Made by a program: the position numbers and the translations under genes. A model generated the notes under the pieces. It searched no databases. It was not told the origin of the DNA and worked only from the letters and a program-made list of their open reading frames with translations. Below, one piece after another: positions 1 to 29,214 of a stretch of DNA of 64,000 nucleotides. The stretch lies in sequence record MH383160.1; one strand, 5' to 3'. Within the stretch, counting starts at the first letter, position 1; every line of letters starts with the position of its first letter.

Positions 1-619
1 ATATAGTACTAAAACATTTGAGTACTGTCAATTAGATAATATTATATTTCTTAAAATAAAATGCGTCCTGTGTTGGTTGATACTCAATGCCATTGCCGTT
101 ATTGACTTCAACTAATAAACCTTTGTCAATAAGTTTTTTAATAGTACGATACCCTTGTTGAAAATTGGTAAAATGTGAATCATTACGAAAGGTATAACCG
201 TGCTTAACTGCTTCATCAATAGTTTTCTTTTCGATTTTAGATAATTTCATTTTGTTTCTCCCGTGTTGGTATAGATATATAATACTAAAACATTTGAGTA
301 CTGTCAACGTGATATTAGTTTTATTTTCTTATTATACTGTTGATGCTCATAAAGGTTTATCTTTCCAGTATTCTCAATTACTATTCTGTTGTTGGTGTCC
401 ACGTCGATTACACGTAGTTTCCCGTTGCTTAACTTCCTAGGCAATAGGTTACCATTAATAAACTCATTAGCAAGCTGTACGGCCTTTGTGATGATTCTCT
501 GAGGTGCTTTATAGTGTACCCGTAAGATGTTATCTTTATATAGTTGAACCTTAATCATTTTGTTTGTCCTATAAAAAAGGCGGGAACTGATCCCGCCGTG
601 TTGTTAGTACTGCAAGTTA

Positions 620-1024
620 TTAGATAACCTGGCGGCGTTTACTGTATACTGTTACACGATTACCCTTACGATCATGTCGGATCTCTTTCTGGTTGCGAAT
701 CAGTTCACTTGGACGCTTAAGGTTTGCCAGGTGATCCGCGTGAGTCCATGCGGTGTGGTTTACCTGTACTTTGATATCAGAATCAGCGATAAACTCATCT
801 TGTGCATCAAGTATTGACGCCAGTAAATCCGCTCGTTTTAGTTCTGCTGCTGTTAGTACTGGCTCCGGTGAATTCACAATATCAGAGATCTCTTTGAACT
901 GTACGGCCCAGCGTTGACCTTTCGGTGCATCTTTGCCCATGTCTTTAAATGTTTCGCCTTCCTCGCGTGCAACAATACGGGCAGCTTCACGGGTAGCGTA
1001 AAATTTAGTAATCATGGTATACAT
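620..1024 (-). CDS. Early hypothetical protein, paralogue of 12330-12596
   Basis: Shares FxATRExARIxARxxGxTFKDMG...G.RWAV and (I/K)HDRKGNRVTVYS blocks with 12330-12596. Confidence 0.8.
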   Translation of the reverse strand: MYTMITKFYATREAARIVAREEGETFKDMGKDAPKGQRWAVQFKEISDIVNSPEPVLTAAELKRADLLASILDAQDEFIADSDIKVQVNHTAWTHADHLANLKRPSELIRNQKEIRHDRKGNRVTVYSKRRQVI

Positions 1025-2086
1025 CCTATTAGTTAAGTTAGTACTACAAGTTAGAGTCTATTATAAAGTACTATCTGGGCAATGTCAAATAGTACTTTAA
1101 ATGGATTCTATTACATGTCTTTCTTACGTTTTACATCGTGGTAGCGAACTGTTATTTCTTTGTTGATCTCTTCCTCGATGCGGTGAATAACTTTTTCTTT
1201 CGGGTTGAAACCTATAACGGTTTCTTTAATGATCTCCAAGCCCGTGTATTCGCCTTGTGTACCGTAACCGTATGTAAAGGTTTCGTGTCCCAGGTCTTCC
1301 CAGCGGTCGCCAATTAACGCAGACACGTAGCAAGAGTGGTAAGTATTGCCGTGTGAATCAGTCCACCGATTAACATTAATGTCAAAGGAGGTTACAATTT
1401 TCAGTTCCACTTTCTGGGCAAGGATCATAGCCATTTTTATTTCTCTCTCTTTGTTAGGAGGGGAACCGTTTCCCCTCACTTGATGTAAACTATTATACAG
1501 TACTAAGATACTTTGTCAATACTTATTTTTTGGAAAGTTTACGCATTAATTCTACGCTTTCTTGTGAACGTTTTGCTACCTGGCAAGCTGTATGGGTAGT
1601 AAACATTTTTGTATAGTCTGACGCTTTGCCACCGAACCGAGCGGCACGTTCACGGGCACTTGGAACTAATACTATTTCTTTCTTGCAGATAGTGCACTTA
1701 GCCATTTTTATTTCTCTCTTTTAGTTAGGAGGGGAACCATTCCCCTCGCTTGATGTAAACTATTATACAGTACTAAGATACTTTGTCAATACTTAATTAT
1801 TGTAAATGTCGTGAATAGTGATAAAGTTTTTACGACCGTAAACCTGCAAATCAGTATCAATAAAGTGCTTATCTAGTACATCCTCGACGCTTAACGCGGT
1901 GTCGTGGATATCTTCGTAGAATTGAGGATCTACAATCTTGCTTAAGTCATCCGGCGTTAACTTATCATTTAACCATTGAACCGCCTGGATATCTGCTTCA
2001 CGTTTCCAGTCTTCCAGGTTAGTAGTCAGTACTTGCTCGATTTCGTTAGCTGTCAGTAGAATCCGCATTTTTATGTTTCCTTATCA

Positions 2087-2260
2087 GTGGTTGATGTAAG
2101 TATTATACTCTTTTACTTTCTATTGTCAAACTATTTTATCAGGGGAGGTTTTCTTATGTCTTACTCCTGGACTACTTAACGGGGTTACTTGTTTCGTTCC
2201 CCGTCCTGATGTAAAACATTATACTTGATTCTAAGTACAATGCAAGTACTTTTTAAAAAT
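2087..2260 (-). repeat. ~175-bp dispersed repeat (copy 1): two tandem promoters flanking an ORF-less hairpin pair
   Basis: Aligns by eye with 12046-12225 (shared ttgtcaaactattttatcaggggag, ttactcctgg, ctacttaacgggg, ccccgtcctgatgtaaaacattatac). Confidence 0.85.
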
Positions 2261-3723
2261 AGTTTTCAGTACTAGCCACCAGCATATAATAGATACATTT
2301 ATGCACCCGGTGGGCTGAATTGTTTCTATGCGTATATAATAGCAAAGGGACTGACCGGAGTCAATCCCTTTTTCAAATATTTTTAAACTTCTTTCGGGTT
2401 GCGATATGTGATAGCGTTCGGGTACATTTGTTTAATGTTATTCCATGCCTGGTTAACATTGTAACCACTTGAGCGAATCAGTTGGTTACTACCGACACCT
2501 TGAAACACTACTTCGAATAAGAATTCTTTCATGCTTTCACCTCGCGATCTGCTTTACCTTTACGCCAGGACATTACTAATTGTTCGCGTTGCCATAAGTC
2601 GAGTGATACAAAAAGTTTTGCGGTATCACTTTTAGGATACTCTCCAGTAGTACCTAACCGATAAAACAGATCTTTCAGTACTGATAATTCTACTTGAATC
2701 ATTTTATTACTCCTGATTGCGTTAATACTTCTACAATTGCATGAATGATCATAAGTACAGCTAAAACAATAATCATCGGATTCATTTGCATAAGCTGTAC
2801 TCCTTCTATTAATCTTTCAGCCAATGATCTTGAATGAATTTTTCACAGAATCCCTGTTTCATGGATTCTAACAGGCGTTCGCGGTGAGCGGCGGCATATT
2901 GCTCAGTACTATGCGTTACGCCAGGCTGATAACGTGATACCCCATCCGGTCCGATGTATTGTACATCCCACGGTTTTTCGTTAGTATCAGACCATTTACG
3001 AACGATTAGTTGACCTTGCATTTTTCTTTCCTCTCAGTGGGGAGAATCATTTCTCCCCTTCATGTAAACTATTATACAGTACTGGGTTGCATTGTCAATA
3101 GTTTTTATTCACCTTGTTTGAATTTAGTTTTCTGCATTGATTCCATGATTGCAACCAATACGCCGTGGATCTCGCTTAACGCGGAATCACTAAAAGCATT
3201 AATGAATAGTCGATCATTCTCGCGAATATTTTTAATGTACTTTTCAGCAGTAGTTGCGAATTCATTCAACGGTAGATCAAATGCTTTATCCCATGATGGA
3301 TGGCGTAATTGTAACAGTACTGGATTATCACGATCACCAGGGGAAAACGTACCAGTGATGAAACATACGCCCGGAATACTTTCGAACTGGCAACGGACTT
3401 CCTTTGTGATAGTAGTATGAATGTACATTTATTGTTATCCTCTATTAAATTAATATTACAGTTTATGAATCAATTCTTTATCTAAGCGATAGCGTACATT
3501 ATTAATAGTAACGGCATTGTTTTTAATGCTACGCTGTACAGGTCCACCAGCAATAACAAATGTTGCTTTATTGCCCCGAACAATGATAGCACTTCCAGGA
3601 TTACCGAAATCATCTTGTACTAAAATACTTGATAAGTTTTCCATTTTTTATTTCCTCTTAGTAGGGGAAGATGTTTCCCCTTGATGCAAGTACTATAACA
3701 GTACTGAAAACTAAATGCAAGTA

Positions 3724-4080
3724 CTATGATAAAATCATGATAGGATATTCACTATCGATCAGTACCTCGAATCCGAAACCTTCGTACCATTCTTTAAGAT
3801 TAAAGGCGTTATCTTCTCCCGTATCGCATTCTAAAATGATACAATCTGAATCATCGGCGGCATCAATAAAGGCATTCATTAATTCGTTACCTTCACCATT
3901 GCCCCGACTATCAGGATCAACATAAAGAGAATCAATAAACGCTACACGGTCATAATCAAGATCCGGTGCAATGATTCCACGTTTAACAAACCAGTACTGC
4001 AATTGTGCTACTTTGCCCTGTACTTGATAGCCAGTGATCTCGCCATTGTCAGTAGTACGCGTGATATGTTGTATTCCCAT
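3724..4080 (-). CDS. GNAT-family acetyltransferase
   Basis: Acetyl-CoA motif A (FIDSLYVDPDSRGNGEGNELM) and motif B (NLKEWYEGFGF). Confidence 0.85.
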   Translation of the reverse strand: MGIQHITRTTDNGEITGYQVQGKVAQLQYWFVKRGIIAPDLDYDRVAFIDSLYVDPDSRGNGEGNELMNAFIDAADDSDCIILECDTGEDNAFNLKEWYEGFGFEVLIDSEYPIMILS

Positions 4081-4143
4081 GATTTCAATCCTCAGTTAAG
4101 ATATAAAATATTATAAACTATCTTTCAGTACTGTCAATACTTT

Positions 4144-4401
4144 TTATCTCATAGATCTATGCCAACAATTACGCGGATCTCTTTTAAAAGTACTATCATG
4201 ATCCTCCTGGCAAGTAATACAATACATGCACCCTATAACGGCCTGGCGTCGATTCTCAGGAATTTTATCGCCGCAGTCGAGGCAATGTACCAGTGATTCT
4301 CTTTGTGCGTTAATTTGCTTTCTAGCGTGGTTAACGGCGGCCTGAATCACTGCGTTAATCTCGTCTTGTTCGGCCCCATCTTTCGCGAATCCTACAGCCA
4401 T
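4144..4401 (-). CDS. TraR/DksA-family C4 zinc-finger protein (YbiI-like)
   Basis: N-terminal helix with acidic D..EQDE residues followed by CLDCGDKIPENRRQAVIGCMYCITCQE. Confidence 0.9.
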   Translation of the reverse strand: MAVGFAKDGAEQDEINAVIQAAVNHARKQINAQRESLVHCLDCGDKIPENRRQAVIGCMYCITCQEDHDSTFKRDPRNCWHRSMR

Positions 4402-4732
4402 TATTTTAACCTCATTATAAAAATACTATAGTACTGTAATGCGACAATAATATTACTTGTTCTTACTTTTTCCAATCCACATGATACCACATATTCATCC
4501 CCATATGTGCGGAACGATACACCATGAAAATTTTTATACACTTGCACTACTAATCATAACCTTTCGTCTAACCAACTGCATAGAATTATACTACTTTACG
4601 CAAATTGATCAAGTATTGATCAGATCATTTTTTGATCAATATTATACAGTTACATTTGTGCACCCTATGGGTTAGTGACGTTCTCGTCTTGATGTAAGTA
4701 TTATGCCAGTACTGGATGATATTGTCAATAGT

Positions 4733-7700
4733 TTATTTTAATTTTTTTCTGTCATTGATTAATGCTTTCAGTACTATACTAATGATTTGCAATGATTCAT
4801 CAATGACTATAAAATTATTTTCTTTCATTAGATGATAGTTACCATTGATTGTATATTCTAAGGAGTACTGTTTACGTTTAATTTTTGATAATGTTTCTAT
4901 TTGTTTTTGTACTGATTTCATGCTAATCATTGTTAAACGTCCTGTAACGCATTCTAACGAGATAAACGGTTGAGTACTGGCATTGTATAGGGTAATGAAT
5001 TAAAGCCCACCAGCGTTAACCAGTGGGCTATAATCTTACATCTTGCGGATAATCTTAACAGTATCTTTCACCGATTTACCGTCTTGCTGACATTGCTCGA
5101 TCATTGCGTATTGTTCTGCGGTCAGATCCTCGCCAGTTTTTGCCAGTACTGCGTCGATGAATGAATCCAGTGCGATCATTTTGTTTCTCTCTTAGGTTAA
5201 GTTAACTACTGTTGATAAAACTTATTATACAGTACTATCAAACTATGTCAATAACTTTAATAGTACTGGTAATATATTTTAGCGGTAGTCGTCGTATGCT
5301 TTATTCACCTGGCGAATGTAACTTTCAAAGGCTTCGTCTACCGTTTCATACTCCCGAACATAATCACCATAGGAAACTACATACATACCTTTTTGATCTT
5401 CAAACGTCATGATGATAGAATCCAGACCAACGATTTCAGTTTTTGCGATGATAGCCATTTTTTAATTCCTTAGTAGTGTAGTTGATAAAACTTATTATGC
5501 CAGTACTATCAAACTATGTCAATAGCACTGTGATAATATTTTTAGTTAATAATAGTCAGTGTAAAATTGTAATCCCCTGCCTGGTATAGTACTTTATCGC
5601 CGAACGTGCCGACACGTTTCATATTGCAATAGATACCCATAACACTTTTTACATCTTTGATATTCCGAACGCCTGTAATATCTTTATTAAAATAATCGTG
5701 GTCAGAAAATAAAACTTGTTTTGCATTTTTCAGTACAGTGCGGATATTAGCCATTTTGTTTTCTCTCTGTTAGTGGGGAGAACTATTCTCCCCTTGATGT
5801 AAACTATTATACAGTACTATAATCTATTGTCAAACTATTTTTTTATATTATTCGAAATCTTCTGGACCGGACTGATAATCATCTTCACCGTATGCACTTT
5901 CTAACCGCTCACCAGTGTAATCATCAGTTAAGCTATCATCCTCATAGTTCACGTCTACGCCTGTGATGTAAAACTGGCTATCGTCTGGATCATTGAAATT
6001 AATTTTTTGGATGTTTACAATAACTGTATTGATGCCCAGGACACCGCCATCAGCCGTTACAAAGTACTGATAGTTTTCACAACCGCCTGAATTGAAACCG
6101 TAATTAATTTCGGCCCGACCATCATTTAAACGCAGTGCCTGGGCAATGATTTCATTTTCAAAGTTAGATTGAGCAATTGAGATAGTCATGATTCGTTTCC
6201 TTATTACCAGGGGAAACCGTTTCCCCTTGCGATGTAAAACATTATACGCTTATTGAGATAGTTTGCAAGTACTTTTTAAAAATAGTTTTCAGTACTCAAA
6301 CATTATACAATAGATACACTCCTGCACCCTGTGGGCTAGTGAGCTATCTCTCAATGAATATATAATAGCAAACTGGCTGACCGAAGTCAACCACTTTTTC
6401 ATTTATTTTTAGCTTTTAGAATCGCCGCCTTTCGCGTCATGCCTTGCTTGATGTACTCATTTACTTTCGCTTTTTTAGCGTTTACCTTGTCTGCTTTCGT
6501 TTTAGGAGTACTGTAAATTATACCGTTAGGATTCATTTAAATCACCATAAAGAATAGATAGGTTACTAACAATGCCGCGATCATTGCACCGACCAGGGCC
6601 GAACTGTAATAAGCTAATGATTTCATTTTTTAGCCTGAAAATAATGTTTAATTTGAGCGGCGGTCAGTGCACAATTACGCAGGAAGTTTTCTGTATAACT
6701 GCGTCGAGTACTGAAAGAAAATTGACCTTTACCGTTCCCGATAGTAACATCAAACCGAGCATTATATTGTTTCATTTTGTTTCTCCTGTTCTTGGGGAGA
6801 ATCATTTCTCCCCTTCATGTAAACTATTATACAGTACTAAAAACTAATTGCAAGTATTATTTTTTAGATTTACGTAAACTTTCTACCATCTCAGGAGTAA
6901 GCCCCAGCGGGTAGGAAACCACTTCATCCACAAAACGCAAAGGGAATACCCCATCTAAAGTTGAACGTGCTTTCTTATTAGTACTCTTTTTTGATGCTTT
7001 CATTTCATATTCCTTAATTAGTGGGGAGAACTATTTCTCCACTTCATGTAAACTATTATACAGTACTAAAAACTAATTGCAAGTATTATTTTCTAAAAAA
7101 TGTTTGTATGCTGAATCAACCACTCTTTCGATAACATACGCTAACGGCACGTATCCAACTACATGACTACAATAAAAAGGACTACGATTAGAATCATCGT
7201 ATGCAAATACTTTTTCAGGATCTGCATCAATCACATACATATTAACCTTTAAGATGTCGATCTTATCCTGTACAGTAAGCATATTAATTAACCTTTTAAG
7301 TACTGGCTTAAGTAGTCTTTTTGATCTTCGGTGATTGCAGTCATCTTCCCTAGTACTGGGTTGATGATATAATCCCCTGTAACGTCCTGTGACGCATTCT
7401 CAGGGTGTTTAACGGCTGGGGTAGCCATAGCCATTGCCTGGACTTGTTCGACGCTGTAACGCTCATAAAGGCGGCATTCTTCCGGTGTTAACATAGCATC
7501 AGTACGCTTCATCGGTTTAATGATGCTTTCGATCTCATTCAGTACTTGATTAACGTTCATGGTATAATCCCCAATATAAGCGGCCTAAAACGACCGCTAA
7601 CGATGTTTTGATTAATAGGTGTAAGGTTGACGCTCAAACAATGATTGCACGTTGTACGCCCCGCTAATGGGCTTTGCTGGCAAATCGATTTTATATTGTT

Positions 7701-8417
7701 CACGCTTAAAGATAATAAAACGGCAATTGTTTTTAACATCAAAATTGATTGAACGTTCCAGGAGTTTTCCATCGTGCACAAATACAAGATAACCGCTTGG
7801 TACTTGTTTTGTAGTACTGGTTGCAACCATAGACCGACGAACATGAGTACCTGCATCGATTAAAGTACTGATATTTTTCATTTTAGTTTCCTTAGTTGTC
7901 TTGATAAAATCTATTATGCCAGTACTATCAAACTATGTCAATAGTACTGTGATAATATTTTTACTTACTTTTTGCTTTCTTAATTGCTTCCACCTGGTCG
8001 GCCCATTCTTTACCCCATACTTGTAAATTATAATGGTACTGGCAAAGAGCAACGCCCCGCTTTAAACCAGTAATAGATTTTTTACCACATTGACAAGTTT
8101 TCATATTAGTTTCCTTGTAGTGGGGAGAATCATTTCTCCCCTTGATGTAATGTATTATACTTTATTCGATTTACTTTGCAAGTACTTTTTTAATTTAATT
8201 CATCCAGGCAAAGGATACGCTCAACGCCCAAATCAGTTAAACTAATGGTCGGCACTTGATAGGTTTCAATGTATGCTACAGTTGCCCACTGACCGAACTC
8301 ATTAACGGCCCAGGTATTCATTGCATTTTGCAATTCCGCACCTGCCTTGTTAGTAATGACTGCAACTACTTGTTCGTTGCCAGTAGTACCAGATACGCGA
8401 GTAATGATAATAGCCAT
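4733..8417 (-). other. Cluster of small early hypothetical CDSs: 4733-4930, 5036-5179 (47 aa, not in ORF track), 5542-5754, 7073-7282, 7288-7560, 7612-7881, 8190-8417
   Basis: ORFs with RBS, most behind a cassette promoter; 5036-5179 translated by hand (MIALDSFIDAVLAKTGEDL...). Confidence 0.7.
5848..6189 (-). CDS. Acidic early protein
   Basis: 113 aa with a strongly D/E-rich C-terminal half (DVNYEDDSLTDDYTGERLESAYGEDD...EDFE); own promoter and RBS. Confidence 0.75.
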   Translation of the reverse strand: MTISIAQSNFENEIIAQALRLNDGRAEINYGFNSGGCENYQYFVTADGGVLGINTVIVNIQKINFNDPDDSQFYITGVDVNYEDDSLTDDYTGERLESAYGEDDYQSGPEDFE

Positions 8418-8654
8418 TGTTTTGATTCCTTTGATTTGGAAGGAGAACCGTTTTCCCCTCTCGATGTAAAACATTATACGCTAATCTATTAATCATGCAA
8501 GTACTTTTTATTACTTTTTGCAAAATACTTTAAACGCTCTCAATCGCATTCTAACGACCTTAACGCCACCAGCTAGGGCGATGTATCAGATAATCAGTTT
8601 AATGCGTTAGAATCGATTATAGGCGGTGCTAGTGGACTGGAATACTATAGACAC

Positions 8655-8692
8655 AAAAAAGCCCACTGTTTAAGGTGGGCTATTGATTCAGT
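8655..8692 (-). terminator. Intrinsic terminator, near-identical copy at 9391-9420
   Basis: AAAAAAGCCCAC-tgtttaag-GTGGGCT hairpin with U-tract on the minus strand, downstream of 8703-9185 and 9435-9734. Confidence 0.8.
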
Positions 8693-8702
8693 ACTTTAAT
8701 TG

Positions 8703-9185
8703 TTATGCTTCAACTTTGCGATGAGCTTCGATCCATTCCTCGCGAGTCATACCGCTTTCTTTGATAGCGTCCAGTACTACCGCAATGCAGTTACCGCGTA
8801 CAGGAATCAAATGTTCTTCACCGTTATCAAGTACTACAGTAACACGTTCTTGAATCCATTTTTTAGGTTTAGATTCTGGCTTATCTTCACCATACTTAAC
8901 CGCCAGGGCTTTATGTGCCATTTCTACAACTACTTCCAGATCCAATCCAGACACTGCCGCCTGGATACTGTCAATTGTTGCTTGCAGTTCGGCTTCACGG
9001 GCTTTTTTCTGTTCTTCCAGTTCTGCTACCTTTTTGGCTTGTAATTCTTTCGCTTCACTGTACGCAATGTTAAAATTGTTGCGTACTGCTTTCATGGTAT
9101 CGTTATCCAGGTCAGCCAGCAATTCAGCAGCAATAACAGTATCGTTTGAAATCAGTGCTTTCAGGAATGATTTTACATTAGCCAT
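8703..9185 (-). CDS. H-NS/StpA-like nucleoid protein with a divergent DNA-binding loop
   Basis: N-terminal coiled coil (ELQAKKVAELEEQKKAREAELQ), basic linker, and a C-terminal domain VLDNGEEHLIPVRGNCIAVVLDAIKESGMTREEW that aligns by eye with the H-NS C-terminal domain. Confidence 0.6.
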   Translation of the reverse strand: MANVKSFLKALISNDTVIAAELLADLDNDTMKAVRNNFNIAYSEAKELQAKKVAELEEQKKAREAELQATIDSIQAAVSGLDLEVVVEMAHKALAVKYGEDKPESKPKKWIQERVTVVLDNGEEHLIPVRGNCIAVVLDAIKESGMTREEWIEAHRKVEA

Positions 9186-9434
9186 TTTATAAATCCTCAA
9201 TTAAAGTTTAGTTTACGTTTATTAGTGTATCAAAGTTTTTTTGACGTGTCCAGTTTTTCGTTCGACTTACTGGCGGTCTACTTAGTGCTCCCCGTCTTGA
9301 TGTAATACATTCTACGCCTTTTTGCGGTATTGTCAACTACTTTTTTAAAACTATTTTCAAAGTATCTCAGTACTACAATACTACAAAAATAAAAAAGCCC
9401 ACTGTTTAAGGTGGGCTAGTGATTCAGTACTATA

Positions 9435-9734
9435 TTATAAACAGTTAATTACTCCGGTGTGCGTTACTTTCTCAGTATCCATAACCGTGACCGATCCACG
9501 CTTAGTACTTGCATCATAATAAATTGTTGTGCTACCGTTTTCGTCTTCTTCATGGAACGGGCCGTTTTTAAATGCTTCTGGTTGGATCTCTAAATCCTTT
9601 AAAACAATCTCGCCCGTACTTTCATTGGTCATCGCAACAGTGCACTGAATGAATTTTTCACTACTCACATCTAACGACGCATTAACAGCGAAAGAGGAAA
9701 CAGATAAAGCCAGGGCGATGATTGCAATTTTCAT
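9435..9734 (-). CDS. Exported protein with signal peptide and a terminal Cys pair
   Basis: MKIAIIALALSVSSFAVNA signal peptide; Cys near the mature N-terminus and at the C-terminus. Confidence 0.75.
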   Translation of the reverse strand: MKIAIIALALSVSSFAVNASLDVSSEKFIQCTVAMTNESTGEIVLKDLEIQPEAFKNGPFHEEDENGSTTIYYDASTKRGSVTVMDTEKVTHTGVINCL

Positions 9735-12045
9735 TTGATTATCCTTAGTTACTAGGGGGAACCTCTCCCCCGTGCTATGTAAAATATTATACAGTACTAA
9801 AAACTAATTGCAAGTACTTTATGATTTTTTATAAAACATTTCGGCAGTGATATTTTTACCCGTTGGTTGTACTTTATCCAGAATTTTTTGATGCCCAGGC
9901 CGTCCAAATGAATATGATCCGTAAACCGTAAACCAGTAGTTACCCTCAGTGTTTACATGTACAGCACAATAGGGAACGCCCCGCGATTCATCACTAGTAA
10001 AGTGTGCTACCGTTCCCGTTACATTCGAAGTCGTTGATTTGATTTGTTCAAGCATTTTCTTATTCCTTAGTTACCAGGGGAACCGCTCCCCCTATGCAAA
10101 ACATTATACGCGTTTAAAAACTAATAGCAAGTATTTTAATAAAAAGTATTTGAAAAATAATTGTTGACAACTGCATCCAGTACTGGCATAATACTTATAT
10201 AAAGACGATACAGTCACTAACCCACAGGGTGCCGAGATCCGTCTATTAAATGATTCAGTACTGAAAAAGTAACGGGGAGTTATTATCTCCCCGCGTTGTT
10301 ATTTGGTAAGGTATAAACAGAAGTCACCTTTATTTGCTACGCCGCCAGTGTAACGCGATGAATAGTTAGAAATATCTTGTACTTCTGCTATTACCAGTGT
10401 ATCATCATTCATTTCGTCGCAGAAGCAAACGGCTGGATCTTTAACGCCGATATTGTCGGCATGTTCCCGCATAGATTTAACCAGTGCTTCCAGTTGAGAA
10501 AGAGTAGTGATATTAGCCATTGTATTTTCCTCATTACCAGGGAGAACCATTTCTCCCCTCTATGTAAAACATTATACAGTACTAAAAACTAATTGCAAGT
10601 ACTTTTTAATTAAATTCCATAAAATCATTCTCAACGTGCACAACAATCTGATTATTTTTAAAGTCCGCAGAAAACTCAATACAATCATATACTGCTTTTT
10701 CTGTTACCATACTATGAGTACCAATCGGATTAATAGGGGATTGAATTGTTTCAATCTCGTTACCTTGTTCATTAACAATTAAAATATTAAACATAACTTT
10801 TACTCCTGATAGTGTTTACCTGATATAAAGTATTATACGCCTTTATTGCTTAGTGTCCAGTACTTTTTAAAACATAATCAAAGACACTTCTCACATCATT
10901 GATCATCGCCTGGCGGTTAGCAGGTAAAGCATCAGGATCACCACTATCCCAAGCCTGTATGAAGCCTCCAAGCTCTGAATAAACTTTATTACGCAATCCG
11001 ATTAACTGTAATTCTTTTTCTTCAAGCTCTTTGATACGTTCAATTAAATCACTCATTAGATAATCCTTAGTACTTAACTGTAAGATCCGCAACGGTCGCA
11101 GTAGTGCCCGTCTTCCTCGTCATCGTCAACGAATTGCCCGACGAAATGATCTACTTTCGCTTTCAGGTTATTATAATCGTTTTCTACTTCCTTTAATCGT
11201 TCCTGGTAGTATTCCAGTGCCTCAAGATACGCCGCCTCAGCAGTTTTTGCACGCATAGCTAAATTCATGCCACGCGATTCATCATAAAGCCAATAACCAT
11301 CAGTGCACTGGCTAATAGATAATGACTTGCTTAATACTGTATAGCTAATTACTTTGCTCATTAGATATTCCTCAGTAAAGGCGGGAACCATTCCCCGCCA
11401 TTATCTCAGTACTAAATTAATATGCGATTGATTCTACTACGCCATCAATAACATTGAATTGATACTCGTTACCCTCGATCAGTGCCGTGATGTTCTCAGT
11501 AGTGAATTGATCCTCATATGCATTCTCTAAATCACGGTACAACTTGCGGGATAATTCACGAATAGTTTCAGTGAGTAGTTCCTCAAGCTCATTAACTAAC
11601 GTTTCTTGTTTTGCGGTTAAATCAGTGTAAGCCGATTCAATGTACCCGCTTACAGTATTCTCATGCGAGTAGTGGGAGTGAGAACGCTTTACACTCATCG
11701 GCAAATCATCTTCATTCAGCAGGTGACGGATTGAGCGATACTTAGTTAATGCTCTTACCTTGCGTAAAAACTTCACTGCGTCAACGTGGTCAGTACTGAT
11801 TGATGCACCGTCACCTTGCGACCAAAAACCACTGAATCGTAAATCTGCGTCATTAATGCCATATTCCGGTAGTACTGTTTCTTTATAGTATTCAATTTCA
11901 CTTTCAGAAAAATAATCATCGTTTAAGTTTTTTTCACGTTCCCGAACCAGTTCGATAGCTGACGTTTGTTGTTCTGCGTTCAATTCAGAAAAAGCCATAA
12001 CATAAGTAGTAGTAGTGATAGTTTTCATTTTGTAACCCTCATTCA

Positions 12046-12225
12046 GTAGTTGATGTAAGTATTATACGCTTTTAAAAACAATTGTCAAACTATTTTATCA
12101 GGGGAGTTTTTCGTGTGCCTTACTCCTGGGCTACTTAACGGGGAGTTACTTATTTCGTCCCCCGTCCTGATGTAAAACATTATACGCCTTTAAACATAGT
12201 TTGCAAGTACTTTTTGAAAAATAGT
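12046..12225 (-). repeat. ~175-bp dispersed repeat (copy 2)
   Basis: See 2087-2260. Confidence 0.85.
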
Positions 12226-12329
12226 TTTTAATCACTTTTATATAGATACACTCCCGCACCCTATGGGCTATCGCCTTGTGTCCGGCTTGTAAGTATTATC
12301 TCACTAAGCCGGATAATGGTCAAGTACTT

Positions 12330-12596
12330 TTATTCAAGTACTGCTATCTTTTTAGTACTGTACACAGTAACACGGTTGCCCTTGCGGTCGTGCTTTATTT
12401 CTACCACTCGACGCGATACACTATCAGGACTTTTTAACGCCGATAACCAGTACTGTAAGGATCTGGCTGTACTTTGCTTTACTACCGCCCAACGTTTACC
12501 ACGTTCCGATTGCACGCCCATATCTTTAAACGTTGCCCCGTCCTGGCGAGCGGCGATCCGAGCTTGTTCACGCGTTGCAAAGTATATAATATTCAT
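12330..12596 (-). CDS. Early hypothetical protein, paralogue of 620-1024
   Basis: Start trimmed to MNIIYFATREQ; shared motifs with 620-1024. Confidence 0.75.
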   Translation of the reverse strand: MNIIYFATREQARIAARQDGATFKDMGVQSERGKRWAVVKQSTARSLQYWLSALKSPDSVSRRVVEIKHDRKGNRVTVYSTKKIAVLE

Positions 12597-14165
12597 GCTG
12601 TTATCCCATCGTTGATGTATGAATAAAATCCTATTATAAAGTACTATCACCGTGCAATAGTACTTTAAATAAATTCTATTACATTCCAACCATTGCAGCA
12701 CGGATCGCCGTAGTGCTATATTTGAATCCGTCCGGCGTTTTATCTTGTCCAGTCTGTTCTAAAAATAGCATCATATGACGGGCCGCATCATTGCGATTAG
12801 TGTTAGCGGCAATAAAGTCCTGGGCCAACCGGTATAATGATTCATCGTTATTAATCCAAAGGCTTACATTCCATTGAGTTTTGTTAGCGTGACCTAAGAA
12901 CATTTTTGATTTAGCCATTTTTAAATCCTCGTTTGATTTGAGGCGGGAATAGTTCCCGCTCTCGATGTAAAGTATTATACGCTATTTGTTAGTACTGTCA
13001 AACTACTTTTTAAAACTTATTCGTAAATCTTGCCACTGTCAGCCCATACCAGGAAACGAGGCATATTATCCCATGCATCTTGTTTTAAATTTAAACCGTG
13101 TAATACTTCTGTACTTTCCATTCCTGGTACTGGTTTACTATACACCGCGAACAATTCACCCATATACTGATAAGCCATCGTTAAATCACTTGCGATCATC
13201 TTATGGATCATCGCATCAAGCATCACGGTAGCGGCGTATTGTTCACGCTTAAGCGGTAACATTGCAATAAGTTCCCGATAAGCTGAAATGTGAATTTTTA
13301 CCGTTTCTGCCGGAAGATCTTTCATCTCGTCGCGGAAGTTAACCAGGTTAGCAATAATTTTATTGATTTGAGTAGCCATCGTTTTAATCTCTCTTAAAGT
13401 GTAGCGGGAAGTGTTCCCGCTCTCGATGTAAAACATTCTACACCTTTCCCAATACTTTGCAAGTACTTTCTACAAATACTTTTAAAATAGTTTTCTTTCT
13501 ATATAGGAGTACTATCATTCAGTACTGCTACACTAGAATCAATCAACCAAATCACTACTATACCCCATAAAACGGCCTCAGACGCATTCTAACGCATTAA
13601 TACACCTAAGCTATACATTTGCACCGCCACCAGCTAACCAGGGCTTTACGATGCGTTTAAACGCGTTAAATTATTTTCAATTATTTTGTTTTTTGCTATT
13701 GACTCAGTACTAAAAAAGCGTATAATTACTACATAGACGCGAGAAAGCGGATATCCCAAGGGGTGCGGAATTGTGCCCAAAATTCAAGATATAAAAAAAA
13801 GGATACACTCCCGCACCCTAGCAGGTCAAAGCACTTTCTCAGTACTGAATCATAGTACCATAGTACGCCCCAGGATGGCAAGCAAATTAATTAAAACTTT
13901 TTTCATCCAGGGTATTGCTTTATTTTTCCAGTACTGTATAATAGTTTCATCAAGTCGAGAAAGACTATAGCCCACCGGGTGCATAGTTACGCCCAAAATT
14001 TCAGTACTAGATTATTTTTTAAAAATATTCATCCAGGCGGTTGACATTGCCCCCAGTTTATTAGATAATGATTCCAGATTCAGAAAAATCTAACTCCAGA
14101 TACTGCGGGGAAACTATCCCCACGCGGTAGGGGAACTATTGGAAAAAAACAAAATAAAATTTTGA

Positions 14166-14295
14166 TTTAGCCGTCTATACTTCCAGACGTGTAACCATCT
14201 AGCCGTTTAGCCGTCCAAACGTCTAGCCATACAGCCATCCAGAAATCTAGCCGTTTAGCCGTCTAGATAGATAGCCATCTTTACTTCCAGACTTC
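14166..14295. repeat. Iteron-like array: 8 x AGCC(G/A)T, a 19-bp direct repeat and an 11-bp direct repeat
   Basis: AGCCRT at 14169, 14201, 14209, 14225, 14233, 14249, 14257, 14273; ATCTAGCCGTTTAGCCGTC at 14197 and 14245; TACTTCCAGAC at 14178 and 14282. Confidence 0.9.
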
Positions 14296-14389
14296 TGGAG
14301 GGCTAGACATATCTACGTCCAAAATCCATCCAGGGTAACTACGCCCAAAATCCGTCAGTACTATACCATAGATCTATCTTTTGAAAGGG

Positions 14390-14463
14390 AGTATTCAGTA
14401 CTGCCACAATAGCCCTCACTGTTACTGTAGGAGGATGAAGACTATCATGTAGTACTGAATACT
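14390..14463. repeat. Perfect 13-bp inverted repeat
   Basis: AGTATTCAGTACT (14390-14402) and AGTACTGAATACT (14451-14463). Confidence 0.85.
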
Positions 14464-15345
14464 GTTAGAGGGAACCCACCAGCTTGTGCTGGTGGCATAA
14501 TGCTTTAGATTAAAATCAGTACTAATACCATTCTGTTAATATCAGTACTGTTATTACGATTTTCATATGAGGTTCAAAAAGATGTACCACCACAGGAGGA
14601 ACTATCTTTTCTGTACTGTCTCACGACAGGAGGTAGAGTAAATGAATTGTTCGCAGCAACTCATCTCTCTATGTAGAACATTATACAGTACTGAATCATA
14701 ATGTCAATAGCTTTCTTTCATTATTCAGTACTGATATTCTTGAGAACTACCCGACTACAAACATCATTATATCCCACAAATCATAAACGTCCCAACGTAA
14801 ATTTCAACTTTCGAAGATCCAACTTTTATTTCATAGGTACTCCAAAATTTTTAGGATCGAGATTTAGGATGGAGTACTAACCAACTTTTTGCTGGAGCCT
14901 CAAGGGGTAATGGAATTTTACCCCGAAGGGTAAAGGGGTAATTGAAATTAAGGTGAAAGTAATAATTCAGTACTAATCATTGCGTGATTACTTTTGATTA
15001 CATTTGATGTAATTTGAAAAATGGAAAAGGAGCTTGGAAACTACAAAGTACGGCAGACTTCCTCTGCCTACTTAGTGGCATATTAGTACTGAATCATTCA
15101 CACACATTTCCGTGCATTCTTGAGCAATCTTGTCTATACTAATCAGTACTGAATCATATATAATCATTCTGTGATTCTACGGTGCTCATATAAATGTTTA
15201 TATATGATTACTTATGACTACCTATGATTACGGGGTTTAGCCTGGGGAGAATCCTAGTGATCGCATTTGTCCAGGCTGAATTTTAACAATTCGCCTGTAC
15301 ATAAAGGTTGTTCACTAGGAGCTTCCCCTGTCTACTTGTGTTTAA

Positions 15346-17468
15346 TTACTTCCTATATATAAGCATTAAGATATAGTAGTACTGATTGTACTGTACATTC
15401 TCTTTAATATTATAAGGGTCTATAGCAATCTCGGTACATCTGTTAAATGCATATCTATTAAATGCCAGTGGAATTATAGATCTAATCCATACTTGTTCAT
15501 TTTCTTTTAGTTTACTTATATAGAAGTTTTTATACTCTTTATGCATAGTATTATGTCTATTAATATGATAGTACTAGTGTTAGTACTGAGCACAATTTTT
15601 CTTTATAGTTCTTAGGGTATATAGAATCTTTTATGCACTCATTGAAGTGCCATAGGTATAATCTTGGGTCGCATTCTTTATATATTCTTACGGGGACGAA
15701 TGTTAGTTTTCTTATATAGAATTCTTTATGTTCTTTATTCATATTAGTACCTGAATATAAGTAGGATTATGTTATAGTACTGGTTAGTACTGCAATGATT
15801 CTCTATACATCGATTAACAGTTATGGAATAGCTATATCTGGCGTAAGCATTATCCAGCGGGATTTTACATTGAGCACTTAGAGAAAGTACAGTAGGTAGT
15901 GTATTCAAATAGAAGTCTTTGTAATTATTCATACAGGAATAGTATACCTATGATGCCGGAGTACAGGTTAGTACTGTTACCATCTTCATTTGCGTTTAAA
16001 GTCATTTGAATACAATTATTGTAGCATACTCTGCCGAAATATGTATTAGTACTTAAAGGTGGTGTAGTCCTTAGAAACATTTGTTCTGAGGGGCTTATGT
16101 ATTTGGAGTAGAATTCTTTATGTTCTTTATTCATATTAGTTAGTGTCTGTATATAAGTAATAGTAAGAATACGTACTGCACATCTTCATCTTTAGTATTG
16201 AGTACTGTACGTATTGCGTCATGGAACAAGAATATAGTACTTGGGTCATGAAAATTTAAAGGGGTTCTGGGTACGGCACATTTGTAGTTCCCTTTAACAA
16301 ATTGTGTGTAGTATTCTCTATGCATATTAGTACCTATATATTAGGGCGAGAATGTAGTACAATTCATATGGAATGTAATTTGGGGTGATCGCACACTGTG
16401 TATGGTAAATGAATTGTTCGGTATTTTTCTTATCCTTGATATCTATTGGGATTTGTGGTATAAGCATTTGGGAGTTTAGATCGAGATGGCTTAAGTAGAA
16501 TTCTTTATGCATATTGTTCTCTTAGAATACGAAAGCTAGGTACAGGGTATGATACAGTACTCGATGATAGCTGTCAAAATCTAGTATACATGCTTTAGTA
16601 CACATAGTAAAATACACTTTATCATTTTGTGCATTGATACCGCGAGGTTTATCTAATAGATTAGTTCTGAGGTACATTGGGAAATATTTTGTGTAGTATT
16701 CTTTATGCATGTTAGTACCTGAATATAAGTAGGATAGTGTTATATAGCTGGTCATAACTACTACTATTTTCTATACTTCGTTCTATGCAGTTATTGAATC
16801 CAAGTACTGCCAAATCGTTATCCAGAGGGACTTTATATCTGGCGTAGTGTTCAAAAATGCTGGGGAGAAATTGTTTGTAGTATTCTTTGTGCATATTGTT
16901 CTCTTTAGTACTTGAATATTAGGGCGAGGATGTAATACAGTTTATATGTTCTATCCTCGTACATTAGGGTGTACTTAGTACATTCTTGGAACATTGTTTT
17001 TGCGTCATCTTTTATGCCCAATGTAACGTTTGGTATAAGGCTTTGTAGATACATTGGGAGTTTCTCTATGTAGTATTCTTTATAGTTGTTCATATTATGT
17101 GTTATTTCGTGAAAACAAGGGTTAGTACTGCATAGTACAAGTCATACGTATCTTTAGGGTTAATAGCACCTTTAATACATTCTTTCATTAATTCATTATA
17201 GATAATTTTAGTACTGAAGGTATTGGATGTTACTATATCGGAATTAAGGTACGACAAGTAGAATTCTTTATGTTTGTGCATATTAGTACTTATATATTAG
17301 TAAAAGGATGTGATACAGTACTCGATTATAGTCTTCAATATATATCGAGGATTTAGTGCACTGAATGAAGTAGTCTTTTTCGTAGTTTTTTTCTATACCC
17401 AATGGTTCTGTTGGTAGAAGGTGTTGGAGATACATTGGGAGTTTCTCTATGTAGTATTCTTTATGCAT
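15346..17468 (-). other. Tandem array A1: 11 paralogous ~59-69 aa CDSs (15346-15546, 15560-15742, 15744-15932, 15925-16134, 16140-16325, 16327-16512, 16522-16710, 16712-16894, 16905-17093, 17102-17281, 17283-17468)
   Basis: Shared N-terminal M(H/N)xx(K)E(F/Y)Y and C-terminal Yx(I/V)LxL(I/V)(F/Y)xY; tight TAA-T-ATG coupling. 17102-17281 translated by hand. Confidence 0.85.
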
Positions 17469-18126
17469 AGTTTGTAATATACGTAATGAGGTGATGCATT
17501 TTCTTATTAGTACTGATAATTTCCTGTACATGTTTTGTCAGATTGTACGCGTTTTTATAGAGTACTGGATTATCGATTACAGTACTGTACATGAATAGTT
17601 CTTCTTCCTGTAGTTCTTTGTGTTCTAGTTCTTTGAGGAATTGCAGTACTGTATCAGTTTCGTCAGTAGGTTGTGCTTGCCAGAAGTGCATTTTCTCGTG
17701 TACTTTTTCTGATCCTACGTAGTATCCATCACCGATTTGGAATTGAGCACTACTGATATCATTTGGTGTATTACAATTCACGAATAGGTATACGTTTCCA
17801 TAAGAGATATTCAAAACACACGGGATACCATTTAACTGTATAGTTAAGCCGAAATATACGTTTTTTATATTTTTAGTACTAGTATTAGTACTCAATACTT
17901 TTAAATCAGTATTATAGATATTCGCATAATCAATAGAGATATTATTTTTCTTCAAGTACGATTTGAGGTTCTTAGATACGAGAACTGTACTGAATTTATC
18001 CTTTTTATTTCGTTTCTTTAGTACATTAGGGTGATAAGTATATGAAGATGTAACTGATTCTGCTTGAATACTGTTGAGGTACTTAAAGTGCTTAAGGTAT
18101 TGTTTACTGTGTGCATTAAGTTTCAT
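17461..18126 (-). CDS. Hypothetical protein (221 aa) interrupting the small-ORF array
   Basis: ORF with AAGGA RBS; unrelated to its neighbours. Confidence 0.75.
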   Translation of the reverse strand: MKLNAHSKQYLKHFKYLNSIQAESVTSSYTYHPNVLKKRNKKDKFSTVLVSKNLKSYLKKNNISIDYANIYNTDLKVLSTNTSTKNIKNVYFGLTIQLNGIPCVLNISYGNVYLFVNCNTPNDISSAQFQIGDGYYVGSEKVHEKMHFWQAQPTDETDTVLQFLKELEHKELQEEELFMYSTVIDNPVLYKNAYNLTKHVQEIISTNKKMHHLITYITNYA

Positions 18127-18136
18127 TTGGTTTCCT

Positions 18137-19746: not shown

Positions 19747-19771
19747 GTGTAGTTCTCCTTATATTCCTTCT

Positions 19772-19800
19772 ATAGTACACCAGTACTGAAAGGATGTCAA
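19772..19800 (-). promoter_or_regulatory. sigma70 promoter for the small-ORF array, divergent from the plus-strand array
   Basis: TTGACA-17-TACTAT on the minus strand with AGTACT in the spacer. Confidence 0.7.
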
Positions 19801-19848
19801 GGGTTTTCTTTATGGGGTAAATATGATATAATGAATAAGGAGGGAAAT

Positions 19849-20985: not shown

Positions 20986-21057
20986 ATATAGGCCAGTACT
21001 TGATACTGGCTTTCTTTTTTTTGTATTAAATATAGTATAATGAATAAGGAGGGATTT

Positions 21058-22167: not shown

Positions 22168-22237
22168 CATAATGCCAGTACTTGATACTGGCTTTTATTT
22201 TTTGATTAAATATAGTATAATGAATAAAGGAGGAATT

Positions 22238-23425: not shown

Positions 23426-23477
23426 TACTGGTATTCTTATTTGTATTAAATATAGTATAATGAATAAAGGAGGAATT

Positions 23478-24665: not shown

Positions 24666-24736
24666 TATAATAGCCAGTACTCAGTACTGGCTTTCTTATT
24701 TGTATTAAATATAGTATAATGAATAAAGGAGGAAGT

Positions 24737-25474: not shown

Positions 25475-25546
25475 AATATAGGCCAGTACTTGATACTGGC
25501 TTTCTTATTTGTATTAAATATAGTATAATGAATAAGGAGGGGAATT

Positions 25547-26689: not shown

Positions 26690-26760
26690 AATTATGCCAG
26701 TACTTTGTACTGGCTTTTCTTTTTGTATTAAATATAGTATAATGAATAAAGGAGGGAAGT

Positions 26761-27936: not shown

Positions 27937-27945
27937 GAGGAAAAT

Positions 27946-29133: not shown

Positions 29134-29214
29134 AGTATGTATATCAAACAGCCAGTACTTGATACTGGCTTTTCTTTTTGATTAAATATAGTATAATGAA
29201 TAAAGGAGGGATTT

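Follow-up and report, generated by a model that had tools for sequence, protein, structure and literature searches.

The stretch of DNA analysed here (the window, 64,000 nucleotides of sequence record MH383160.1) begins with 22,000 nt (1-22000) that are 100% identical to Escherichia phage UB (MH383160), a 353-kb Asteriusvirus, which is a Rak2-like jumbo and giant E. coli phage. By sequence alignment, window 1-15072 is homologous, in reversed orientation, to positions 1-15860 (equal to 353741-369600) of phage fEgEco12, which carries a direct terminal repeat (DTR) of 20,993 bp with ends determined by PhageTerm and confirmed with restriction digests (PMC13070987), and in which both DTR copies are identical. 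The alignment is near-identical on both sides of window position 15072, where position 1 of the fEgEco12 DTR falls, and the UB record contains a single copy of the repeat, as expected of a collapsed assembly. By homology to this mapped DTR, its boundary included, window 1-15072 very likely belongs to the long DTR of a Rak2-like jumbo phage; the presence of the repeat at both ends of the UB virion is inferred. UB's own ends are known by homology only, and in the collapsed assembly window 15072 would at the same time mark where the right DTR copy has its inner edge. The UB DTR is inferred to be ∼19.7 kb long, with the other ∼4.6 kb lying outside the window, past position 1. The features of the region are as follows.

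1..15072, minus strand: inner 15 kb of the DTR of phage UB, very likely, by homology to the fEgEco12 DTR
2276..2283, minus strand: intergenic Chi facing the right end, orthologue of fEgEco12 13577 (plus strand)
3544..3551, minus strand: Chi within a 62-aa ORF (3456-3644, minus strand), facing the right end, orthologue of fEgEco12 12328 (plus strand)
5004..5029, minus strand: terminator-like hairpin with Chi 5007-5014 as its 3' arm (-21.8 kcal/mol, z = -3.8)
8566..8573, minus strand: intergenic Chi facing the right end, orthologue of fEgEco12 6681 (plus strand)
8628..8635, plus strand: decayed Chi GCTAGTGG with one mismatch, fEgEco12 orthologue 6619 (minus strand)
13627..13634, minus strand: Chi in a non-coding leader, facing the right physical end, exact match
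14476..14495, no strand: back-to-back Chi pair CCACCAGC-TTGT-GCTGGTGG, a perfect hairpin (8-bp stem, 4-nt loop) with one Chi per orientation
14680..14707, minus strand: first perfect sigma-70-type promoter inside the left end (TTGACA-16-TATAAT, 12/12 matches)
15072..15072, no strand: inferred left physical genome end of UB, where fEgEco12 DTR position 1 (AGTAGGCAGAGGAAGTCTGCC...) aligns

The small ORFs of the early-gene region in the UB DTR read leftward in window coordinates, and perfect TTGACA-N16/17-TATAAT promoters occur 11 times on the minus strand of window 1-15072 and not at all in window 15073-30000. The one at 14680..14707 is directed inward, toward the Chi pair. Because perfect sigma-70 promoters are found only in the DTR, terminal redundancy and a host-transcribed early region are confounded as properties of this DNA.

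The exact Chi octamer GCTGGTGG, which enteric RecBCD is known to recognise (PMC13181404), occurs on the minus strand at 2276, 3544, 5007, 8566, 13627 and 14476, and on the plus strand at 14488; hosts of these phages, according to database records, are E. coli and Klebsiella. With expectations for window 1-15072 from Markov models of orders 0-3 in which the Chi sites were masked, the minus strand contains 6 sites against 0.08-0.10 expected (Poisson P 1.6e-9), and the plus strand 1 against 0.02-0.05. The whole window contains 12, while shuffling leads one to expect 0.48, and no shuffle out of 100 reaches that count. The exact Chi sites are thus real and far above chance in window 1-15072. Those of the window outside the DTR lie at 24896, 25151 and 25409 on the plus strand, all three being Gly codons of one gene (ORF 24719-25474), and at 44246 and 61498 on the minus strand. 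The earlier note, made from the sequence alone, had listed the seven sites, and all positions and strands proved exact; its estimate of about 0.05-0.07 expected per strand is about right, and its placing of every site except 3544 between genes agrees with the deposited UB annotation. It had also read the pair as a point where Chi polarity switches strand, and this is corrected: there is no boundary between two polarised fields, since the pair lies just 577 bp from the inferred end and the plus-strand sites further right are Gly codons.

The plus-strand member of the pair (14488-14495) lies 577 bp inside the left physical end and faces it, while the minus-strand member (14476-14483) is the innermost of the sites facing the right end. 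The pair is kept in fEgEco12 (578/590) and in 121Q, and has a counterpart in the DTR of Klebsiella phage fENko-Kae01 (Kae01), CCACCAGC-TTAA-GCTGGTGG at 484/496; lacking a U-tract, it is not a typical intrinsic terminator. The hairpin at 5004..5029 is followed by UUUAAUU, a weak fit to a terminator with a G+C-rich stem and U-tract, and contains no opposite-strand Chi because of G-U pairs in its 5' arm; a hairpin of like design is present at Kae01 19354 (GGCCACUGG-UUAAC-GCUGGUGGCC-UUUU). Folding gives no significant hairpin for Chi 13627 (z = +0.6), which is shared with 121Q and missing at the homologous fEgEco12 position, or for Chi 2276, which lies directly upstream of an early promoter, and leaves the octamer at 8566 itself largely unpaired. 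The orthologue of Chi 3544 sits inside fEgEco12 g032. The orthologue of the decayed site 8628..8635 is an exact, left-end-facing Chi in fEgEco12, and a left-facing Chi recurs 6.5-7 kb from the left end (fEgEco12 6619, Muenster 6454, Kae01 7013).

In fEgEco12 the DTR contains 12 Chi in 21.0 kb (1 per 1.75 kb), against 24 in the 332.7 kb outside it (1 per 13.9 kb), a rate ratio of 7.9 (P 6e-7); 12 of the 36 sites thus fall in 5.9% of the non-redundant genome. Masked Markov models (orders 0-4) predict 0.10-0.23 sites on the plus strand of this DTR, where 10 occur, and masked Markov expectation on its minus strand is 0.03-0.09, where 2 occur. The Klebsiella phages Muenster and fENko-Kae01 share only ∼30% nucleotide identity with fEgEco12. 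The PhageTerm-defined DTR of Muenster contains 8 Chi (7 plus, 1 minus), the left-facing one nearest the left end being 6.45 kb in, with none in the 30 kb beyond the DTR, and that of Kae01 contains 14 (12 plus, 2 minus), with its back-to-back pair 0.48 kb from the left end and none in the 20 kb beyond. RaK2-like, GAP32-like and other jumbo contigs have 5-10 Chi per 20 kb with the same bias. In the jumbo phages DTR G+C is 36-37%, and DTR Chi occur at 1 per 1.4-2.5 kb. The excess of Chi is therefore confined to the repeat and recurs independently in three lineages. Equal Chi density genome-wide, which the earlier note had named as grounds for refutation, does not hold in fEgEco12, where the DTR has 7.9 times the density of the rest (P 6e-7).

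The enrichment is specific to the octamer. The exact word is at 70-120 times expectation in four DTRs, while its 24 one-mismatch neighbours, pooled, are at expectation (4 vs 3.3, 5 vs 2.4, 6 vs 2.9). In an unbiased 8-mer ranking Chi stands 2nd to 26th in the DTRs, and the words ranked above it, as checked in fEgEco12, are just overlapping words of AGTACT and promoter motifs. That the cluster arose without selection, from composition alone (G-richness of the coding strand, codon usage or DNA taken from the host), can be all but set aside. In its favor, Chi orientation tracks GC skew and transcription across the window, and some Chi outside the DTR, three in the window and six in fEgEco12, coincide with Gly-rich codons of RCC1-like genes. 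Against it, the 10 sites observed compare with 0.1-0.2 under masked Markov models (orders 0-4), a result that together with the lack of enrichment of one-mismatch neighbours in the DTR contradicts this explanation; in addition, adjacent regions of the same gene orientation lack Chi, most DTR sites are non-coding, and a G+C of 36-37% is not host-like.

The flanks of Chi vary between sites and between lineages. Non-coding DNA holds 20 of the 34 DTR sites and makes up ∼32% of the DTR, four of the Kae01 sites lie in promoter spacers, and some DTR Chi serve as terminator arms, so that Chi are probably placed where their cost is small (non-coding DNA, promoter spacers and terminator arms). Purine-rich context (A or G at +4 to +7) enhances Chi (Taylor et al. 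2016, PMC5041463), and among 97 distinct sites such purines are not enriched (0.45-0.54 vs a background of 0.53). A second alternative is that the octamer is part of phage regulatory elements, such as hairpins or a protein-binding site, its identity with Chi being accidental. Two window sites do lie in strong hairpins (5004-5029 and the pair), and the cluster overlaps the early region read by host RNA polymerase. We nevertheless regard this as very unlikely: 2276 and 13627 have no significant structure and the 8566 octamer is largely unpaired, flanks differ and sites occur alike in coding sequence, promoter spacers and leaders, and in these phages of E. coli and Klebsiella the enriched word matches the enterobacterial Chi exactly, with single mismatches not tolerated.

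With the repeat at both ends of the packaged DNA, each DTR Chi faces one physical end, and this holds for every DTR Chi in fEgEco12, Muenster and Kae01, whose ends are mapped, and by homology in UB. The UB bottom-strand sites face the right physical end, which is the outer end of the right repeat copy. UB has nine coding-strand Chi (six of them in the window), all facing the right end with the nearest ∼1.4 kb in, and one left-facing Chi, in the back-to-back pair, 0.58 kb from the left end. Measured inward from the ends, the first end-facing Chi of fEgEco12 come at 0.58 kb on the left and at 1.36 kb on the right, and UB is the same. The proposal in the earlier note of a terminal-repeat region with end-facing Chi is thus supported by homology to the mapped fEgEco12 DTR: the sites face the ends, not away from them (mapped in fEgEco12, by homology in UB). 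Over the DTR Chi of the three lineages the coding strand has 29 sites and the other strand 5. Composition models place 56-75% of sites on the coding strand, and one-mismatch variants split 15:5, so the 29:5 bias is not clearly beyond composition: P is 4e-4 to 0.03 with Markov baselines of 56-70% coding strand, but rises to ∼0.1-0.3 with a baseline of 75-80%, the level that the one-mismatch variants point to. The strand bias is therefore partly compositional.

On balance we lean toward the view that the DTR Chi are selected RecBCD control sites, which protect the ends and drive recombination of repeat with repeat, a function inferred without any experiment. RecBCD would load wherever the injected DNA, or an intermediate that is replicating or has been cut, exposes an end, and would run into a Chi of the proper orientation within ∼0.5-1.5 kb; on the right side, up to ∼10 more such sites would be available. 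At Chi, degradation would stop and RecA would be loaded on a 3' tail still within the repeat. The RecA-coated tail may then invade the other repeat copy, on the same or a sister molecule, giving a circle, a concatemer or a recombination-primed replication fork, and sparing the early genes in the repeat. Such a mechanism needs no phage protein and can therefore act at time zero. An encounter of RecBCD with the ends in vivo, and recombination or protection as its outcome, are inferred, as are nicking, hotspot activity and attenuation at these sites. The role in end protection or end recombination put forward in the earlier note thus stays an inference, and its wording of mimicry of host 'self' DNA is disputed in the literature (bioRxiv 10.1101/2021.07.08.451572). 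In the literature searched, no data on RecBCD dependence of growth were found for this phage group. The deposited fEgEco12 annotation includes a RecA/UvsX-like protein (g372), a UvsY-like ssDNA-binding repair protein (g373), a gp47/46-like pair (g337/g338) and endonuclease VII (g339). These genes count against the reading of the DTR Chi as RecBCD control sites, as do the strand bias that composition may explain, the confounding with the early promoters, the lack of enriched purines at +4 to +7, the 6.45 kb from Muenster's left end to its nearest left-facing Chi, and the scarcity of Chi in the T5 DTR. No match to Gam, Abc2 or gp5.9 was found among the 10 largest DTR ORFs; an inhibitor is not excluded.

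Chi is known to attenuate RecBCD degradation of linear DNA and to bound hotspots of CRISPR adaptation. A third alternative is that Chi act on RecBCD purely in defense, capping degradation, sparing the early genes and limiting the fragments available for CRISPR spacer acquisition, while recombination is incidental and done by a phage UvsX/gp46/47-type system. Both the annotation of recombination genes in the phage family itself and the position of the first end-facing Chi, 0.4-1.4 kb from the ends, favor this reading. It is nonetheless unlikely, as defense alone predicts back-up Chi past the repeat, yet there are none in the next 20-39 kb in three lineages. The stopping of Chi at the DTR boundary fits the need for a homologous partner, as in the preferred reading of control sites for both protection and recombination.

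A bolder version of that preferred reading, to which we give somewhat less than even credence, is that the 20-kb repeat of Rak2-like jumbos is a dedicated RecBCD-capture module. A bidirectional Chi gate ∼0.5 kb inside the left end and some ten Chi facing the right end would lead host RecBCD/RecA to close the genome into a circle, or to prime its replication, at time zero, ahead of all phage gene expression. If true, this would occur in virulent phages that carry their own recombinases too, and the top over-represented non-promoter word in the DTRs of relatives with other hosts would reveal the Chi of those hosts.

The E. coli chromosome uses the same octamer with a one-strand bias, facing the commonest DNA ends, but its polarity follows the direction of replication at ∼1 Chi per 4.6 kb (PMC12315714), whereas the jumbo Chi form a 20-kb terminal module at 1 per 1.4-2.5 kb in DNA of 36% G+C. 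Phage T5 likewise has a long fixed DTR (10.2 kb), which contains pre-early genes read by host RNA polymerase and enters the cell first (first-step-transfer DNA), but this DTR has just 2 Chi (8127 and 8689, both plus) and no DTR-specific cluster, T5 relying on pre-early proteins; Chi clustering is thus not general to DTR phages. In lambda red gam chi+, Chi activity is likewise set by orientation to the RecBCD entry end, and Chi rescues growth via RecBCD-dependent concatemers, but those sites are laboratory mutations in a phage naturally without Chi (PMC12315714), while the jumbo sites are natural, multiple and conserved. Natural end-clustered Chi are known from P1 and the lambdoid LLS, by analogy the closest precedents for the jumbo DTR cluster; in both, Chi are end-clustered and end-oriented, and the phages depend on or gain from RecBCD (PMC12315714; bioRxiv 10.1101/2021.07.08.451572). 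P1 (with P7 and D6) carries 50 Chi over 94.8 kb, their density peaking near the pac-proximal, terminally redundant ends (PMC12315714; bioRxiv 10.1101/2021.07.08.451572). Like the jumbo phages it is terminally redundant and linear on injection, with Chi concentrated where packaged ends fall and a proposed RecBCD/RecA recombination of terminal repeats to circularise; P1, however, is temperate and headful, with variable ends and Chi genome-wide (1 per 1.9 kb), while the 350-kb jumbo phages are virulent, with fixed ends and a Chi excess limited to a defined 20-kb repeat. LLS belongs to the 'no Rec module, high Chi' class, for which positive selection to exploit RecBCD was inferred (Zheng et al. 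2025, PMC12315714). It has a Chi cluster at one end, with 20 of 23 sites oriented for RecBCD entering there and Chi as its top octamer, but its ends are of the cos type, it carries neither recombination genes nor a RecBCD inhibitor, and its growth enhancement by RecBCD has been measured, whereas annotation gives the jumbo phages recombinase genes of their own, and they have a bidirectional Chi pair at one end.

An exact search for the octamer GCTGGTGG (CCACCAGC when read on the opposite strand), the Chi site of the host DNA-end-degrading enzyme RecBCD, places the following sites in the window:

2276, 3544, 5007, 8566, 13627 and 14476, bottom strand: Chi, GCTGGTGG
14488, top strand: Chi, GCTGGTGG
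14476 and 14488, both strands: back-to-back pair, CCACCAGC-TTGT-GCTGGTGG
24896, 25151 and 25409, top strand: further Chi
44246 and 61498, bottom strand: further Chi

The seven sites from 2276 to 14488 and the TTGT spacing of the pair had been claimed in an earlier note made from the sequence alone, and all were confirmed by exact search; its claim that all but 3544 are intergenic also held, the deposited annotation placing only that site inside a gene. The whole window contains 12 Chi, compared with 0.48 expected from dinucleotide-preserving shuffles. Positions 1-15072 carry 6 Chi on the bottom strand (0.08-0.10 expected, P 1.6e-9) and 1 on the top strand (0.02-0.05 expected; Markov orders 0-3 with the sites masked). 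The three top-strand Chi near 25 kb are a matter apart from this cluster, being formed by GGT-GCT-GGT-GG codons of the Gly-rich ORF 24719-25474. This ORF has no Pfam match and is surrounded by a top-strand series (19831-27936) of paralogous 375-450-aa genes with RCC1-like repeats (Pfam RCC1_2, WD40_RLD), about 13 of which occur in the related phage fEgEco12 (PP777464), annotated as 'chromosome condensation regulator' or 'DNA condensation protein'.

Over positions 1-22000 the window matches Escherichia phage UB (MH383160), an Asteriusvirus of 353 kb, with 100% identity. The direct terminal repeats (DTRs) of its relative fEgEco12, 20,993 bp in length, were detected by PhageTerm, with confirmation from restriction digests (PMC13070987), and positions 1-20993 of its record are identical to 353741-374733. 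The window runs in the reverse orientation, its position 1 corresponding to fEgEco12 15860 (369600 in the right copy). Position 1 of the fEgEco12 DTR aligns at window 15072, with near-identical flanks on either side, which makes window 1-15072 the inner 15-kb part of UB's repeat. The UB record is a collapsed assembly with a single repeat copy, and the remaining ~4.6 kb, containing three more bottom-strand Chi, lies to the left of window position 1. A UB repeat of ~19.7 kb is thus inferred from sequence alone, with ends placed by homology to fEgEco12. The repeat is an early region, consisting of small ORFs with their own promoters, and includes 11 perfect sigma-70-type promoters on the bottom strand; none was found in window 15073-30000.

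Several other features lie close to the repeat boundary. The non-coding leader contains short tandem repeats (14168-14266, 14985-15017 and 15203-15231) with 8/16/24-nt units of the TAGCCGTC type, and units of the TGATTACATT type flank the inferred left end at 15072 on both sides; these may be packaging or end-recognition elements. Just beyond the repeat, bottom-strand positions 15346-19891 encode about 20 densely packed ORFs of ~60 aa each, a block that in the virion borders the right-hand DTR and whose GC skew is reversed relative to the DTR genes, although these too lie on the bottom strand. The fEgEco12 counterparts (g596-g613) are annotated as hypothetical, and the only ORF of the block that was tested (69 aa, 15925-16134) had no Pfam match.

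Confinement of Chi to the repeat was assessed across the entire fEgEco12 genome, with the repeat counted once (36 non-redundant Chi). The DTR contains 12 Chi (10 top, 2 bottom; 1 per 1.75 kb), where 0.10-0.23 and 0.03-0.09 are expected on the respective strands with sites masked, while the other 332.7 kb contain 24 (1 per 13.9 kb), 6 of them in the block where the Gly-rich RCC1-like genes lie. Chi density in the DTR is 7.9 times that of the rest (P 6e-7), and the rival possibility of an equal Chi density genome-wide was not borne out. In an unbiased ranking Chi is 16th of all 8-mers in the fEgEco12 DTR, and those that outrank it are all overlapping parts of the CAGTACTG palindrome or of the early promoter. 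Clustering as a general property of DTR phages was also considered and rejected, as the 10.2-kb DTR of T5 holds just 2 Chi. The repeat is the sole region with strong host-type promoters, so that early region and terminal redundancy remain confounded as correlates. Single sites turn over within the genus: GCTAGTGG at 8628-8635 on the top strand is a left-facing Chi remnant with one mismatch, intact in fEgEco12 (6619, bottom strand), while 13627 is missing in fEgEco12 and fEgEco12 11378 is missing in UB.

Chi is recognized by RecBCD only on approach from the 3' side of the octamer. The bottom-strand Chi of the window are in the active orientation for RecBCD that enters at the outer end of the right-hand repeat; in UB as in fEgEco12, the first Chi facing this end lies 1.36 kb from it. 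The top-strand Chi at 14488 is in the active orientation for entry at the left physical end (15072), from which it lies 577 bp inside. Because the virion DNA carries the repeat at each end, every repeat Chi, on either strand, faces one physical end, and its strand decides merely which end it serves. The earlier proposal of a terminal-repeat region with Chi facing the ends is supported by the mapped ends of fEgEco12, those of UB being placed by homology.

Similar clusters occur in the Klebsiella phages Muenster (Alcyoneusvirus) and fENko-Kae01 (Kae01), which share ~30% nucleotide identity with fEgEco12. The PhageTerm-annotated DTR of Muenster (1-20030) contains 8 Chi (7 top, 1 bottom), with none in 20031-50000, and that of Kae01 (1-19736) contains 14 (12 top, 2 bottom), with none in 19737-40000. 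Kae01 also has a back-to-back pair, CCACCAGC-TTAA-GCTGGTGG, at 484-503, ~0.5 kb from its left end, and all three lineages have a Chi that faces the left end from a distance of 6.5-7 kb. The sequences flanking Chi are unrelated among these lineages. Four Kae01 Chi (3711, 9192, 16840 and 18721) lie exactly in the -35/-10 spacers of early promoters, a position where sequence can mostly vary.

Further relatives were taken from an alignment-based search with the bottom-strand ORF 11417-12028. This ORF encodes a 203-aa DTR protein (phrog_5162, annotated in Muenster as a YeeU-like antitoxin) with 43-95% identity across the jumbo group and >300 IMG/VR relatives, many on ordinary-sized contigs; because the family is so widespread, only contigs of >=340 kb were used. 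Phages 121Q and RaK2, GAP32-like phages and other jumbo contigs have 5-10 Chi per 20 kb around this common gene, with the same strand bias, and in the Kae01 DTR and the jumbo loci L018 and L016 Chi takes 2nd to 6th place among all 8-mers. Two IMG/VR contigs, L056 and L058 (343.5 and 373.5 kb), carry the DTR-type gene with one Chi only in 20 kb. Their hosts may have a different Chi, and they might serve as a natural negative control; no candidate alternative Chi was found among the over-represented 8-mers in the 20 kb of L056 examined. A single-protein locus search with ORF 11417-12028 matched 121Q alone, and an IMG/VR scan for CCACCAGC-N4-GCTGGTGG was uninformative, returning 46 contigs with 121Q as the single jumbo relative and the others unrelated (mostly 1.9-60 kb, three at 81-92 kb).

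An origin of Chi in composition, codon usage or strand skew was rejected on the masked Markov expectations together with a one-mismatch control. Exact Chi is at 70-120x the order-0 expectation in four DTRs, while the 24 one-mismatch variants, summed on the coding strand, number 4, 3, 5 and 6 against expectations of 3.3, 3.0, 2.4 and 2.9. This enrichment of exact Chi, with its variants at expectation, indicates that the repeat has been selected for the exact RecBCD recognition sequence and not for its compositional neighbourhood. In the non-repeated sequence of fEgEco12 both are raised, the variants less (~3-5x expectation; 127 and 146) than exact Chi (~11x; 14 and 10). The coding-strand bias of DTR Chi, 29:5 in three lineages, may itself owe something to composition: composition models predict 56-75%, and the one-mismatch variants are distributed 15:5. 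Purines at +4 to +7 are said to enhance Chi (PMC5041463), and no enrichment of A/G at these positions was seen over 97 sites; T is present at -1 in 55 of the 97, many of them mutually homologous.

An origin in terminator hairpins is suggested by a strong hairpin resembling a terminator (-21.8 kcal/mol, z = -3.8), with the Chi at 5007 as its 3' arm, and by the 14476/14488 pair, which forms a perfect hairpin without a U-tract. These are the only sites with the octamer in a strong hairpin; 2276 and 13627 have no significant structure and the 8566 octamer is mostly unpaired, so structure fails to explain the Chi set and this origin was rejected. The hairpins at 5007 and Kae01 19354 are maintained by G-U pairs in the 5' arm, with Chi formed on a single strand, and in the left-end pair both arms are Chi. 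Over three lineages 20 of 34 Chi are non-coding, compared with ~32% of the DTR.

Separately, an AGTACT palindrome (often CAGTACTG) is strongly over-represented, with 92 copies in 1-15072 (e.g. 14500-14760) and 168 in the remaining window, and is the top 8-mer of the fEgEco12 (40 copies) and Muenster (61 copies) DTRs. In early promoters it directly adjoins the -35 box (AAAGTACTTGACA or ...TTGCA), and beyond the DTR it supplies the two arms of terminator hairpins (AGCCAGTACTnnnAGTACTGGCT and then a T-run; e.g. 20990-21012, 24672-24692 and 26696-26714).

The Chi sites, their exact-sequence specificity, their confinement to the repeat and their geometry are shown; the action of RecBCD on these ends in vivo is inferred, the searched literature containing no RecBCD experiment on these phages. 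In the proposed mechanism, RecBCD would load on an exposed end, degrade inward and within ~0.5-1.5 kb reach a Chi facing that end; on the right side it would have up to about ten such opportunities. At Chi it would nick the DNA, cease degradation and load RecA on a 3' tail still within the repeat. The coated tail would then invade the second copy of the repeat, whether on that molecule or on a sister, to give a circle, a concatemer or a fork primed by recombination, and the early genes in the repeat would be spared. The proposal offers functional reasons both for the very long repeats, which would leave homology to spare after RecBCD resection, and for the Chi cluster ending exactly at the repeat boundary, since a RecA-coated tail needs a homologous partner. 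End protection or end recombination, the function inferred in the earlier note, has not been shown and remains an inference. The phage group is annotated with RecA/UvsX-, UvsY- and gp46/47-like recombination genes. Pfam and PHROGs searches of the 10 largest DTR ORFs recognized no RecBCD inhibitor or end-protecting protein, matching only a GNAT acetyltransferase, DUF7247 and PHROG families of unknown function; this is a weak negative that does not exclude an inhibitor. A separate scan matched ORF 4144-4401 to the DksA/TraR zinc finger.

Since Sharanji, a phage of this genus, grows on MG1655, E. coli K-12 allows a direct test of the hypothesis. The hypothesis bears on the prediction of host range and efficiency for therapeutic jumbo phages on hosts differing in recBCD status, and potentially provides a sequence-only route to inferring the Chi motifs of other hosts.

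No report of Chi in these jumbo-phage repeats was found in the literature searched. The closest precedents are P1, with 50 Chi that are densest near its terminally redundant ends and a circularization that needs RecBCD and RecA, and the lambdoid phage LLS, with 23 Chi clustered at one end, of which 20 have the orientation for RecBCD entry. LLS has no Rec module, and its growth is enhanced by RecBCD. If the proposal is true, Chi accumulation to exploit RecBCD extends beyond temperate P1 and Rec-less lambdoids to virulent jumbo phages whose long terminal repeats are fixed and which have recombination genes of their own. The jumbo phages resemble P1 and LLS in their proposed mode of working but carry recombination genes, the lack of which is one defining feature of the LLS class, and the traits new relative to both precedents are the confinement of Chi to a fixed 20-kb DTR, the bidirectional Chi palindrome near one end, and the occurrence in virulent jumbo phages of several genera.
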